DNA of 45,324 nt from Chlorokybus atmophyticus (lineage: Eukaryota; Plantae; Mesostigma and Chlorokybus algae). Positions within the stretch are counted from its first letter, which is position 1. Every line of letters starts with the position of its first letter. Positions 23,102-40,621 of the stretch are shown piece after piece. A program made the translations under genes and the position numbers. Under the pieces are notes generated by a model, which was given only the letters and a program-made list of their open reading frames with translations, did not search any database and had not been told where the DNA came from. The DNA is taken from contig RHPI01000026.1 of assembly GCA_009103225.1 (NCBI GenBank), positions 258,558 to 303,881 on the forward strand, given 5' to 3'.

Positions 23102-25175
23102 CACACCGATTGACGTCAAAGGACCATGAATGGTCCGTACCTCTGGACCGGGAATTCCCCCTGCTAAGTGAAATTGGTGGACCATATATGGTCGGACTGT
23201 CAATGACAGTCGGACCATGCATGGTCCAAACCTCACGTGAACGGTCCCATGTTTTTTTGGGGTCGCACCATCTATGGTGACCTGTTTGTATGAGTTTGCA
23301 AGGACCATGTATGGTGCAATGCCCCCTGGCGCAGAAGACCAGGCATGGTTTGTTACTTCCACATGTCTGGTGATCGACAGTCGCACCATGTACGGTCCAT
23401 GGATACGGACCGGAAGTCTTATTTTAAACTGACATATTTCAGACCATGCGTGGTGCGCTGCCCTCCTGGCTCAGTGGACCATTTATGGTGCCAGTCTGAT
23501 CGACAGTCGCACCATGCACGGTCCATGGATACGGACTTTGTTGTGCATATGTGGTCCACAAGCGGTACCATGCATGGTCCTAACAGACAACGCACCATAC
23601 ATGGTCTGATTGACAGTCGCACCATGCATGGTCTATCATGATGTCACAGCCATTGAAGCCATGCATGGTCCACAAGCGGCACCATGTCTGGTCCTAACAG
23701 ACAACGCACCACATGGTCTGATTGACAGTTGCACCACGCATGGTTTGTCATGATGTCACAGCCATTGAATCCATGCATGGTCTTAGCACTGGTGCCTGCA
23801 CCGTGCCCGGTGCATACAATCCGACACGCATGCAATTCACANNNNNNNNNNNNNNNNNNNNNNNNNNNNNNNNNNNNNNNNNNNNNNNNNNNNNNNNNNN
23901 NNNNNNNNNNNNNNNNNNNNNNNNNNNNNNNNNNNNNNNNNNNNNNNNNNNNNNNNNNNNNNNNNNNNNNNNNNNNNNNNNNNNNNNNNNNNNNNNNNNN
24001 NNNNNNNNNNNNNNNNNNNNNNNNNNNNNNNNNNNNNNNNNNNNNNNNNNNNNNNNNNNNNNNNNNNNNNNNNNNNNNNNNNNNNNNNNNNNNNNNNNNN
24101 NNNNNNNNNNNNNNNNNNNNNNNNNNNNNNNNNNNNNNNNNNNNNNNNNNNNNNNNNNNNNNNNNNNNNNNNNNNNNNNNNNNNNNNNNNNNNNNNNNNN
24201 NNNNNNNNNNNNNNNNNNNNNNNNNNNNNNNNNNNNNNNNNNNNNNNNNNNNNNNNNNNNNNNNNNNNNNNNNNNNNNNNNNNNNNNNNNNNNNNNNNNN
24301 NNNNNNNNNNNNNNNNNNNNNNNNNNNNNNNNNNNNNNNNNNNNNNNNNNNNNNNNNNNNNNNNNNNNNNNNNNNNNNNNNNNNNNNNNNNNNNNNNNNN
24401 NNNNNNNNNNNNNNNNNNNNNNNNNNNNNNNNNNNNNNNNNNNNNNNNNNNNNNNNNNNNNNNNNNNNNNNNNNNNNNNNNNNNNNNNNNNNNNNNNNNN
24501 NNNNNNNNNNNNNNNNNNNNNNNNNNNNNNNNNNNNNNNNNNNNNNNNNNNNNNNNNNNNNNNNNNNNNNNNNNNNNNNNNNNNNNNNNNNNNNNNNNNN
24601 NNNNNNTATGGTGACCTGTTTGTATGAGTTTGCAAGGACCATGTATGGTGCAATGCCCCCTGGCGCAGAAGACCAGGCATGGTTTGTTACTTCCACATGT
24701 CTGGTGATCGACAGTCGCACCATGTACGGTCCATGGATACGGACCGGAAGTCTTATTTTAAACTGACATATTTCAGACCATGCATGGTGCGCTGCCCTCC
24801 TGGCTCAGTGGACCATTTATGGTGCCAGTCTGATCGACAGTCGCACCATGCACGGTCCATGGATACGGACTTTGTTGTGCATATGTGGTCCACAAGCGGT
24901 ACCATGCATGGTCCTAACAGACAACGCACCATACATGGTCTGATTGACAGTCGCACCATGCATGGTCTATCATGATGTCACAGCCATTGAAGCCATGCAT
25001 GGTCCACAAGCGGCACCATGTCTGGTCCTAACAGACAACGCACCACATGGTCTGATTGACAGTTGCACCACGCATGGTTTGTCATGATGTCACAGCCATT
25101 GAATCCATGCATGGTCTTAGCACTGGTGCCTGCACCGTGCCCGGTGCATACAATCCGACACGCATGCAATTCACA
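23102..25175. repeat. Left subterminal repeat array (GGACCAT/ATGGTCC and GACAGTCGCACCATG units)
   Basis: Many copies in both orientations and ~110-nt tandem units at 23563-23790; includes an N gap and a probable assembly duplication. Confidence 0.88.
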
Positions 25176-25199
25176 GAAATGCTGTAATGGACTGTCAAA

Positions 25200-27716
25200 C
25201 AACAGCCCATCAGTGTCAAGCCAGTGAGACTGTAGCTACAGTCTCCTACATGCACTTCAAGCTGCGGTTACAGGAGGTAACAGGAGCAGCTAACAACATC
25301 AGTCTCTTGTGTTGCCAGCACCTTCGCCTGGAAGCCAGACTTGTGCTCTCCCTGGTTGATTCAGCCCCAATGTGAAGACACCCGCGACAGCCTTGCTCAA
25401 CAGCATCTCTTGCAAACACTCAGCGAGTGCTTGTTGAGCTCTGCACAACAACTGTACTGTCACGTGCTTACACAAACAGTAACTTGACCATAGCACAGGA
25501 AACCACCCACCTAGGAGGATGACGAGGGCTGTCGCGTCCACTGCCTCTTGGGTCGGAATGGCTTTCTCTTCTTTGCCTCGCTCAAAAGCCCTGCATTGTA
25601 CCAAATCATCACTCTTGAAAACCAGCAAAGGACTGTCGTTAACTTGCTGCAGTGAAGTATGCATACCTGGTAGTTTGCGATTGGATCCCCACTCGCACCC
25701 TCCTTCAACATCTTTGTTGGACACCAACCACTTTTTCCTGGCAGCAAAGCTGACAATGGCTCTCAAGATCAGCTCGTCTGGCACACGCTCCATTCGGTCG
25801 GGGTCCTTGAATGCCAGCTGGTGACCATTGTGGAACAGCGTGTGCTCGATGTGGTGGTAGTACTCATACATGTCCATTGCCTCCTCTCTGGTGGGGGCGT
25901 TGGGCTTGGTGTTGCACACGATCCCCGCTGCAGTTCGCAAGTCCATGGCGGCGGCTTCTTCATCTTCACAGTTAGAGATCGCCCCAGCAACCTGCCCAGG
26001 ACCCAGAGTGGTCAGTGCAGTCCATTGGCGACTGTCAATACGATTGACAGTCTGCAGTGCGTTGATGACTGTCAAGAACTGCAACATGTAATGCACTTTG
26101 CGACTGTCAAGGCGTGATCAATGGCTGCATTGGCGACTGTTCATCATGTGACAGCAGCCTAACAACAGCCCTTATTAACCTCTGTGTCTGTGCTGTGCCT
26201 GGCTGCGGGCGTAGGCAGCCGGTCCTTGATGCAACCCGGCACCGCAATGCGCTCATCGTTAGCGCATGCCTCACAGGGGCAGATGCCTCCGCTGGCCAAG
26301 AACATCACGGGCCACTCCATCTCCCTGCCCTGCATGTTGTTGTGTTTAGCACAAGAAATGCTCATACACTACACCATACAGTCACAGCAGGAGCATGTGC
26401 ATGTCCACAGCAAGCAATGTACCTCCAGAGTACGCCCACCAGGCAGCTGCTTGTCGGCGTGCCATAGAGAAAATGCCTTTCTTTCACAGGTAGTTGAACG
26501 GCAAGGTTGCCATCCTCACTTCTCATTGCCATCCAGTGGTTAACAGAGACTAGATACGTGCGCATTGGTTGGCTCGCATACGGAATCGATGGTGGCGACG
26601 CCAACAACTACTGCGTTGTTGCAAATGTCGAACACCTGATCTTCAGCAAATCCGTTCGCACCCCTGTCGTGACACGCAGAGTAGCATTCAGAGTAGCAGG
26701 CACCATGTGTTAAGCCATTACGCATGGAGTCAGCAGCTCAGCAAAACAGTACAACAGGACCGAAAGTCGACCGACAGCACCATGGTTGCTTACCTCTCTT
26801 TTAGCCAAGTGGCCCGGTACTGAGCGTTTGTGAGAGGAAGAGCGGTTAAAGGCGCAAGCATGACCACCTGCTGGTTGGCCCTCATGTCCCTCCCCAGACA
26901 AAATGTCATGCCCCAGCCAGCTCCAGCTTGAGCAGCGCGGCTGCCTTGTGCAGCTTCTCTGTCGCTGCCACGCCTTTGCTTCTTGGCCTCAGTGCGTTTA
27001 TGGACGCTCTTCTCGGTACCACTGCCGCGCTTCGCGCCAACGGAGTACTGCAGCACCAGTACATGCTGCTTGATTTGTGCTGCAACACAAGCAGATAAGA
27101 GTACAGCAAAGTACCAACGGCAAGGACTGTCAACGGCAAGACAGCTCCAATACAGCATTTTCAGCTGTTGAAAGATGGCATCTAGCAGAAGTCAGCCTCA
27201 AAGACAGCATATCGCAATTGGTCAATGAATCAACAAGCACAAACACAGCAACCAGGGCAAGGACTGTCAACGGCAAGATAGCTAAGCAGACAGTGAGTGA
27301 ACTGAAAGCTGAACGACATGCTTGAAAGCTCACTTCAACACAGCTGAATTCAAGTTTCTGTCAAACAGCAGATGTCACCAAGAAAGCAGCTCACCTTTTG
27401 TCCACGTGAGCGTGTGGTTTGCGTCAAAGACCAGTGGAAGTGACTGCTGCAAGACCGCCTCGCATACTTCACCGAGCTCCTGCCGGTGCTAGGCATTCAT
27501 CTTGAAGTCCTTGCCCTTCATACCTTGAGGTAGTGGCCACTTGCTTAACATCTCCTTCTTCAGCTTCTCCAGGTTGACCATCAGCGCTGTGCGCATATGC
27601 TTGTACTCCTCCTTCATCAAGAACTGCTGGCCTGTCACCTGGCCCAGCAAATGGTTGCCCTTGGCCCTGAAGCAATCAGCTGCAGCAGGCAGTTGGCTGC
27701 CCTCCCCAGTAGCCAT
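25200..27716 (-). pseudogene. TnpA-like (CACTA second ORF), multi-exon, with one in-frame TAG and one probable frameshift
   Basis: Exons join at GT-AG sites: MATGEGSQ...KMNA*HRQELG...WTK|AQIKQHVL...NQQ|YRATWLKER|GANGFAEDQVFDICNNAVVVGVATI...(frameshift)YLVSV...AVQLPV...SCLVG|GREMEWPVMFL. The V.G...V.V...LP...G....WP pattern resembles the TNP1/En-Spm TnpA domain. The 3' end is approximate. Confidence 0.55.
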
Positions 27717-39651: not shown

Positions 39652-39759
39652 TAATATTGCGCCAGCATTCGTCCACCAAGTACACCGCCAAGAGGCTGCC
39701 GCCGCCGCCACCAACAAGAGCGCCGCCGCCTGCTCCCTCCGCCGGCGCCACCTCACTGA

Positions 39760-40621
39760 GCGGTAAAACCCTACTGCACAGACCACGGTACTCTGAGCCC
39801 ATGCACGTGAGTTGACAGTCGCACCATGCAAGGTGCTTGACTCTATGGAGTAACTGCACACCGTTCGATAAGCTTGGATCGACGGTTACTAGAGGCTGCC
39901 ATGAAGACTTACCCTTGACAGTCGCATCATGCATGGTGCGACTGTCAAGGAGCTGAGCGTGCATCAGCGATGGTCCCAATCACTGTTCTGCGGACCAACC
40001 TAGAACCACGCATGGTCCGTACTCTCCCAGACCTTCGGACCAGGAAGAGCTTGGTTAAGTCAAGGACCATATACGGTCCGCAAGTATACGACAATTTGGA
40101 CCAATAGCTGCCTGGTTAGCTTAAGGACCATAAATGGTCCACAACTTATTAGATTTTGAACCAGTAAGAGCTTGTTAAGGCGGCAGACCATGTATGGTGC
40201 GTGCTGCTTGTCCAACATGACCGATAAGCTGAGCGTGCACCAGCAACGGTCCGCCCAATCAGTGTGGTTCGGACCAGTCCCATCGAATTCATTCACCGCA
40301 ACATATATGGTCCGGCATTGTTGTGGTCCAGACCACGCATGGTCCGTACACCCATTGACAGTCGCACCGGCAATATGCCTGGTCCGGCTGCAGACCGTGT
40401 ATGGTCCAGTCTTGCGCGGCCAGTAGAACCGGTAATATGTCTGGTCCAGCCACGCACCACATCTGGTGCGTGACTGCGCACCAGGATTCGGGACCCCGAA
40501 CGGACCAGGAACGGTCCGTCACTCGCGGACCAGGCAGTCCTGGCCCGCGGGATACGGACCATGCATGGTCTTGGGGGTCCGTGAAAGGACCATACCTGGT
40601 CTTTGAACGTCAATCCGTGTG
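39760..40621. repeat. Right subterminal repeat array of the CACTA element
   Basis: Repeated GGACCA/TGGTCC and TTGACAGTCGCACC, the same units as the left array. Confidence 0.85.

Follow-up and report, generated by a model that had tools for sequence, protein, structure and literature searches.

Build-up of a short motif specific to one transposon has already been demonstrated in the VANDAL elements of Arabidopsis, where it covers the whole element, and in Arabidopsis Spm, where it is limited to the termini. The protein VANC21 binds the 9-mer YAGTATTAY, which has accumulated in the non-coding parts of VANDAL21; targeting is determined by how dense the motif is, and hypomethylation extends across the entire element (PMC5735166). 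In Arabidopsis Spm, TnpA, whose double helix-turn-helix (HTH) domain is derived from transposase, binds the clustered motif CCVTCGCAAA, and the TnpA of Spm1 'KAKUSEI' activates and demethylates cognate copies, for which a motif density of at least about 2 per kb matters (bioRxiv 10.64898/2026.08.24.746577). Here we analysed a stretch of 45,324 nucleotides from the green alga Chlorokybus atmophyticus (contig RHPI01000026.1, positions 258,558–303,881; the whole stretch is called the window hereafter), which holds a CACTA-type (EnSpm/CMC) DNA transposon at positions 23102–40621 (17,520 positions including 1,992 N). Throughout this element the 9-mer TTGACAG[TC]C recurs, forming a motif array that is real and highly non-random. 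Judged on its sequence, the array most probably consists of functional binding sites and represents a variant of the self-addressing strategy known in plant DNA transposons. The best available comparison is VANC21/VANDAL21 (PMC5735166, PMC10398659); in both cases a 9-bp motif is enriched in one transposon, here within the window. VANDAL21 is, however, a Mutator-superfamily element of Arabidopsis, while the algal element joins the CACTA superfamily with a VANDAL-like whole-body motif pattern.

An exact count gave 55 copies of the 7-mer TTGACAG/CTGTCAA in the window, 51 of which lie within the element and four in the flanks (starting at 8478, 12078, 16881 and 22325). With 15,528 non-N bases in the element and 27,676 in the flanks, the enrichment has a Fisher's exact P of ~1e-18, in a comparison that covers one element copy within one window and in which the flanks are other transposons, not host genes. 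Dinucleotide shuffles of the whole window contained 9.5 copies on average and 16 at the maximum, and the number expected within the element is 1.9 under uniform composition and 3.9–8.9 under Markov models of orders 1–3 fitted to the element. An initial annotation of this DNA, made by manual counting, had put about 50 copies inside the element, about 3 in the flanks and about 2 to be expected by chance, which is in agreement with the exact values (51, 4 and, for uniform composition, 1.9). The sites that it cited all exist (30682/30696/30709, 30969/30982, 29876 and 29915, and 34421/34508/34532), and so does the pair given as 26031/26044, the first coordinate of which should read 26032. A k-mer comparison of element and flanks also bore out the enrichment in the window, made it stronger than first stated and lengthened the word: the motif ranks first among the 7-, 8- and 9-mers of the element, and the conserved unit is the 9-mer TTGACAG[TC]C, with 40 copies in the element, none in the 27.7-kb flank and an expectation of 0.2–0.75. 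The element/flank counts of the individual words are 51/3 for GACAGTC, 37/0 for TGACAGTC, 30/0 for TTGACAGTC, 10/0 for TTGACAGCC and 49/0 for TGACAGYC. After merging a duplicate at an assembly gap (gap 1, see below), 49 unique 7-mers remain. Decay of CpG was considered as a cause of the motif and rejected, because the excess of TpG/CpA is already inside the Markov expectations; the observed/expected ratio of CpG is 0.64 in the element and 0.69–0.76 in the flanks.

The motif has an invariant GACAG core. Single-base variants of TTGACAGTC number 7, 8, 14 and 3 copies at positions 1, 2, 8 and 9, and 0, 1, 0, 0 and 0 copies at the core positions 3–7, and the core TGACAG is present in all motif copies. 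In the flanks of the element, any single variant is found in just 0–1 copies, with no position exceeding 2. Outside the 9 nt the information content is about zero, so the copies are not pieces of a longer repeat. Moreover, the sequences next to most copies are unrelated, and few copies belong to tandem arrays or local repeats, with the motif present in just four small tandem arrays, so about 39 of the 49 unique copies are taken to be of independent origin. These results bear on the possibility that the dispersal has no function at all, and that micro-duplication, slippage or gene conversion over short patches seeded pieces of the subterminal repeats inwards, where they simply stayed. Some copies did clearly arise by local duplication, namely a period-13 triple (30678–30716), a period-15 pair (33094–33122) and motif-bearing repeats of 39, 75, 87, 112 and 137 nt, and the central position of all ten TTGACAGCC copies suggests local spread as well. 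However, this does not account for the large majority of copies with unrelated flanks, nor for the open-frame copies, which are 7-fold over the synonymous expectation (see below), and the palindrome half of the subterminal repeat never goes along into the interior. In addition, neutral decay of a repeated unit would spread mismatches over all nine positions, and it is unlikely since the core is essentially spared from them. We regard a functionless dispersal as unlikely. As for the two subtypes of the motif, all ten copies of TTGACAGCC (the GCC subtype) are central (28072–36635), for which we estimate from the positions a random-placement P of roughly 5e-4, and the 30 copies of TTGACAGTC run from end to end; the GCC/GTC split is reminiscent of VANDAL21, where the motif has C-type and T-type subfamilies.

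The motif occupies 16 of the 18 one-kb bins of the element, which upholds the earlier claim that it is spread across the whole element, introns included. In the interior (25190–39330), about 45 dispersed copies of [TC]GACAG[TC]C are found in both orientations at 2–6 per kb. The density of the motif is 4.2 per kb in the subterminal zones, the same in the other non-coding sequence, 2.4 per kb in all long open frames and 0.14 per kb in the flanks. The homology-supported exons of the transposase and SET genes hold 2 copies in ~2.9 kb (~0.7 per kb), while 9 copies in 2.7 kb (3.4 per kb) lie in a coiled-coil frame and 2 in the low-complexity N-terminal frame of the transposase. Taken together, the long open frames have 19 of the 51 copies, against 2.7 expected and a maximum of 8 in 500 synonymous-codon shuffles. 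The motif fills every place of weak protein constraint. The statement in the initial annotation that the copies cluster in introns and spacers is right as to their depletion in conserved exons, but it does not hold for the 19 copies in long open frames.

Both orientations are about equally frequent (29+/31-) and are mixed inside genes of either direction (runs test P 0.13), and the lack of strand bias argues for recognition at the DNA rather than the RNA level. A role in the RNA of the element could be supposed, in which the motif would enhance splicing, serve as a signal like a branch site or be targeted by small RNAs, given that many copies lie in putative introns and that TTGAC fits the loose branch-site pattern YTRAY. 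Against this, each transcription unit has the two orientations at equal frequency, the window contains no match to an Rfam family, and the three tandem copies of period 13 at 30678–30716 (minus strand) are antisense to the gene in the clearest intron, a putative 88-nt GT-AG intron (30639–30726) directly after the SET exon that is predicted from splice-site consensus only. A function at the RNA level is very improbable, and it was rejected for the lack of both strand bias and an Rfam match. As regards spacing, eight close pairs (16 nt or less) were observed against 3.8 expected (P 0.03), and this excess, with direct pairs 12–15 nt apart, suggests cooperative binding. The site profile, independence, orientation and spacing most probably point to a protein-binding site on double-stranded DNA. 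Furthermore, each gene has a cluster of the motif a short way upstream of its first recognised coding block, at 26032–26110 for the left open reading frame (ORF), at 29876–29935 for the SET exons and at 39281–39948 for the transposase. The first of these has four copies, precedes the first ATG of its ORF by 86–160 nt and includes an inverted pair, GACTGTCAAT-acg-ATTGACAGTC (26030–26053). Such an arrangement would be compatible with auto-activation.

Compared with this layout, VANDAL21 is alike in that its motif is found chiefly in introns and in the non-coding sequence between genes and at the termini and spreads over the whole element, in that specificity is attributed to motif density and not to single sites, and in that two motif subtypes exist (C-type/T-type there, GTC/GCC here). 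It differs in that its motifs form same-orientation tandem arrays (PMC5735166), whereas the algal copies are mostly solitary and in both orientations. Moreover, the motif is here also found in low-constraint coding sequence and in the subterminal transposition repeats, and no VANC-family match was found in any ORF of the element.

At the two ends, the motif is physically linked to the subterminal and terminal repeats. The left terminal inverted repeat (TIR), CACACCGATTGACGTCAAAGGACC (23102–23125, plus strand), contains ATTGACGTC, which is the dispersed motif minus its central A, and the right TIR, CACACGGATTGACGTTCAAAGACC, is read on the minus strand at 40598–40621. The left subterminal zone (23122–23841) has 13 palindromic 14-mers of the form (G/C)ACCATGCATGGT(C/G) at 23122–23800, of which six are directly preceded by GACAGTC to give the composite unit TTGACAGTC-GCACCATGCATGGTC. 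The right subterminal zone (39807–40601) has eight such 14-mers at 40065–40588 and composite units of motif and palindrome at 39812–39836 and 39915–39948; the latter is a 34-nt near-perfect palindrome made up of TTGACAGTC, a 16-nt palindromic core and GACTGTCAA, and thus a full symmetric composite site. All 21 palindromic 14-mers lie within ~740 nt (left) or ~560 nt (right) of the ends, and none was found in the element interior; in the absence of an interior 14-mer, nested family members were ruled out as the source of the interior motifs. The 9-mer adjoins the strictly subterminal palindrome GACCATGCATGGTC at both element ends. From its sequence layout, the 9-mer is one half of a putative composite end-binding site, of which only the 9-mer half has spread inwards. 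Because it abuts the subterminal palindrome and the TIR carries ATTGACGTC, the motif appears to be tied to the element's own machinery. In this respect the element is similar to En/Spm of maize and Arabidopsis, which belongs to the same CACTA superfamily and has motifs of 10–12 bp in both orientations within a few hundred bp from each end. The 12-mer of maize TnpA, which we take to be CCGACACTCTTA, and the subterminal variant TCGACAGTCGCA are identical at 8 of 12 positions.

The borders of the element are given by its host sequence, a Ty3/gypsy retrotransposon. A homologue of the gypsy pol protein (P0261) aligns at 22148–23098 (residues 430–744) and resumes at 40625–40999 (residues 746–870), and because the interrupted pol resumes one residue later, the borders 23102 and 40621 and a 3-bp target-site duplication ATA (23099–23101 and 40622–40624) are confirmed. 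The termini begin with CACACCGATTGACGT... and CACACGGATTGACGT..., that is, CACAC.../...GTGTG overall, and the two ends agree at 14 of their first 15 nt. In comparison with the start CACTA/CACTG, CACAC agrees at the first three bases and differs at the fourth and fifth. The earlier identification of a SET-bearing CACTA element is confirmed, the SET domain by a match to PF00856 and the CACTA type by the transposase relatives, the ATA duplication and the subterminal repeats.

The initial annotation had also offered the reading that the sites serve to hijack a host factor, a TALE-class homeodomain protein (KNOX/BELL or MEIS-like), for activation at a life-cycle stage such as the zygote. The sequence TTGACAG contains the MEIS consensus TGACAG (PMC11584712), and the nine bases of the motif are the first nine of TTGACaGTCA, a site for BEL5/POTH1 in the promoter of potato StBEL6 that was confirmed by electrophoretic mobility shift assay (PMC3904721). 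It is also known that zygotic transcription in green algae is driven by a KNOX/BELL pair (PMC4889651). Any KNOX/MEIS-type homeodomain would probably bind the core in vitro. Such a binder would have to be the host's, because no homeodomain was recognised in the element, and the transposon would then be wired into a life-cycle switch. The TGACAG core fits this reading, but the conserved positions around it do not. Just one of 40 copies has A as base 10 (G in 18, C in 10 and T in 11), so the second TGAC half-site is not kept and the tail-to-tail double site TTGACaGTCA is not conserved, and ten copies, a quarter, read GCC instead of GTC. The consensus of KN1 has G/C and then T at positions 8–9, unlike the motif, where these are T/C and then C, with G in 6 of 107. 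In Chlamydomonas, moreover, the zygotic element ZYRE is a different word, similar to CGTGACGTGAC (PMC4889651). Stage-specific activation needs a few promoter sites and not ~60 over 17 kb including coding sequence, so that both the copy number and the whole-element spread are unlike a promoter element, and the fixed adjacency to the transposon's own subterminal palindromes is left unexplained. A host TALE factor is a minor possibility and rather improbable.

From the observed enrichment, profile, dispersal, depletion in exons and link to the subterminal repeats and TIR, we infer, with confidence a little short of even, that TTGACAG(T/C)C may be the recognition site of an element-encoded, sequence-specific protein that binds double-stranded DNA over the whole body in a VANC-like manner. 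Candidate binders would be the transposase, through its DNA-binding part, and an accessory protein in the role of TnpA. At the ends, the 9-mer and the palindromic 14-mer GACCATGCATGGTC would form composite, partly symmetric sites, a layout as expected for a bipartite or dimeric binder that builds the transposition complex; this protein would recognise these composite sites and, over the rest of the element, the 9-mer on its own. The 9-mer alone has built up wherever coding constraint allows, in introns, spacers, low-complexity coding sequence and upstream of the three gene blocks, and the whole 17 kb would thereby be marked as 'self'. By analogy with VANC/VANDAL21 and TnpA/Spm, such dense coating might let an element-encoded protein act on its own copies only, and the effect of binding could be activation of transcription, counter-silencing or recruitment of the element's SET-domain methyltransferase. 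In the last case, an address label (the 9-bp site with an element-encoded reader) and a writer (the element's own SET lysine methyltransferase) would set the chromatin of the element's own copies only, a combination that we consider doubtful.

Several points weigh against an element-encoded reader. All the evidence comes from one element copy. A Pfam scan of 30 open frames on both strands recognised no DNA-binding or TnpA-family domain in the element and gave matches only to SET and, weakly, to Transposase_21; no homeodomain or other simple DNA-binding signature was recognised in six frames, and no relatives were detected for the left ORF or the accessory frames. En/Spm differs here as well, as no TnpA-family or double-HTH domain was recognised in the algal element and TnpA-like proteins are reported to be restricted to flowering plants. 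In Arabidopsis Spm, motifs, binding and hypomethylation are found at the termini only, whereas here the 9-mer is present throughout 17 kb and only the palindromic 14-mer is terminal. Moreover, two in-frame stops in the accessory frame (see below) suggest that this copy may be decaying, although short introns or readthrough may also explain them. Finally, four distant loci with transposases 31–35% identical to that of the element, two from ENA metagenomes (L001, L002), one from Riccia sorocarpa (L003) and one from Logan (L004), contain no TTGACAGTC, and no 9-mer occupies more than 5 one-kb bins in them, against 16 here; this contrast is weak because the borders of their elements are not established. 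They share only the transposase core with the element. Further exons may be hidden in the 1,992 N. The earlier proposal of VANC-like self-targeting by TnpA or the SET protein is partly sustained, by the site-like profile, the confinement to the element in the window, the depletion in conserved exons and the presence of the motif in the subterminal units, but its choice of binder is a guess, because neither a TnpA homologue nor a DNA-binding domain was recognised.

If the element-encoded reader is real, what is new is an algal CACTA element in which a subterminal motif has spread over the whole body together with a SET-domain gene, and dense short-motif self-addressing would be a recurrent strategy of DNA transposons. 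If label and writer act together, VANC-like self-recognition would have had an independent origin, in a different superfamily of transposons and beyond the land plants. The element would offer a compact testable pair, with the 9-bp site on one side and a few candidate binders on the other.

The gene models of the element were inferred from sequence and the exons were searched separately. The transposase lies on the minus strand, with one exon at 37394–38500 that covers a Cys-rich region and reaches into the catalytic core (tblastn of 27 homologues; match to Pfam Transposase_21, PF02992, at E 5e-4, below the cut-off) and a core exon at 35652–37178 that runs into assembly gap 3 (tblastn coverage 35682–37154). 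The segments 38500–37394 and 37154–35682 are covered by up to 119 homologues in tblastn, and the homology ends at 35682. Using HMMER, 329 relatives were found (best E 5.5e-47, 33–40% identity), of which the nearest named ones are from the fern Adiantum nelumboides and the liverwort Riccia sorocarpa, where the proteins are named 'Transposase'. By these relatives the enzyme is predicted to be a DDE transposase of the Transposase_21 (Tnp2/TnpD) type, with a catalytic triad read by eye. A word-based protein search with the transposase exon gave no match and HMMER no relative above ~40–49% identity, and neither the composite subterminal repeat nor the TIR has an exact match in the metagenome collection. 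Downstream of gap 3, an open frame at 34668–35366 (minus strand) is a possible C-terminus of the transposase, for which tblastn gave no homology support. Upstream of the core, an open frame at 38778–39167 (minus strand), low-complexity and then Cys/His-rich, has two motifs inside a 75-nt repeat and no Pfam match.

The SET-domain cargo exons (29905–30638, plus strand) consist of an N-part in 29905–30279 and a second exon at 30270–30638, in which the SET domain was recognised with PF00856 (E 8.8e-9, 36.2 bits against a cut-off of 22.4). The best matches in PDB (ASH1L and SUV39H2, both with E ~0.1, SET1 and NSD) are all non-significant. Within this exon (30420–30470), the usual N-H-S/C reads I-N-S-V-H, and the later E-L-x-x-D-Y is kept as E-L-L-L-D-Y; activity and substrate of the predicted protein are uncertain. 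Downstream of it, a proline-rich and then coiled-coil frame at 31476–34148 (plus strand) has nine motifs and the two in-frame stops, TAG at 32475–32477 and TAA at 33237–33239, and the coiled-coil repeat pattern continues straight over the second. Because it has in-frame tandem repeats of 33 nt in the proline-rich part (31793–31865) and of 42 nt in the coiled-coil heptads (32687–32825), this accessory protein is considered fast-evolving and repetitive. The left ORF (25302–25946, minus strand) encodes 215 aa from the first ATG inside a 272-codon open frame (25302–26117), and no homologue was found in Pfam, PDB or the databases. Its single-sequence AlphaFold model has a pLDDT of 35 and is unusable as such; the two three-helix groups joined by a ~60-residue linker in it are superficially like a TnpA-type double tri-helical HTH, which is taken as a lead only and not as evidence.

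Three assembly gaps interrupt the element, and the motif counts are independent of them apart from two copies duplicated at gap 1. On the two sides of gap 1 (23842–24606), the 569 nt before (23273–23841) and after it (24607–25175) are 568/569 identical, with a single G/A difference (23450/24784). The gap most likely represents an unmerged contig overlap, although the repeat may instead reflect two alleles. Under the overlap reading, collapse would shorten the element by 1,334 positions, and the motifs starting at 24944 and 25056 would be second counts of the ones at 23610 and 23722. Gap 2 (28901–29845) lies just upstream of the SET exons, where a C19 run follows directly (29846–29864), and the 5' part of the SET gene may be hidden in it. 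Gap 3 (35368–35649) falls within the transposase gene, with a (GT)22 run directly before it (35323–35367). Since the C19 and (GT)22 runs adjoin them, gaps 2 and 3 both lie at low-complexity sequence. A single 837-codon frame across gap 3 hinges on the estimated 282 N, so the continuity of the frame is not established.

Outside the element, its insertion site lies in the integrase to chromodomain part of the gypsy pol (20415–23098 and 40625–40999), the reverse transcriptase of which is at most 53% identical to database entries, with the best named matches from Closterium, Haematococcus and Symbiochloris. In the left flank, the ORFs at 3647–4240, 5825–6619 and 19388–19765 are retroelement-like by eye, and with the gypsy pol they make it probable that the neighbourhood is repeat DNA. 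Among the distant loci, L001 (GC content 39%) has the top words ATGCATAA and AATATACAT (a roughly 190-nt tandem) in local arrays at 2239–3781 and 18613–19379, which flank the transposase gene without dispersal, the classical layout, and may be the subterminal arrays of the L001 element. In the 27.7-kb flank of the Chlorokybus element (1–23101 and 40622–45324), the word ATGCATG occurs 32 times, roughly ten-fold over the uniform expectation, and CATGCATG nine times. The same CATGCATG core is the centre of the element's subterminal palindrome, and CATGCATG/ATGCATG may be a genome-wide word of the host.

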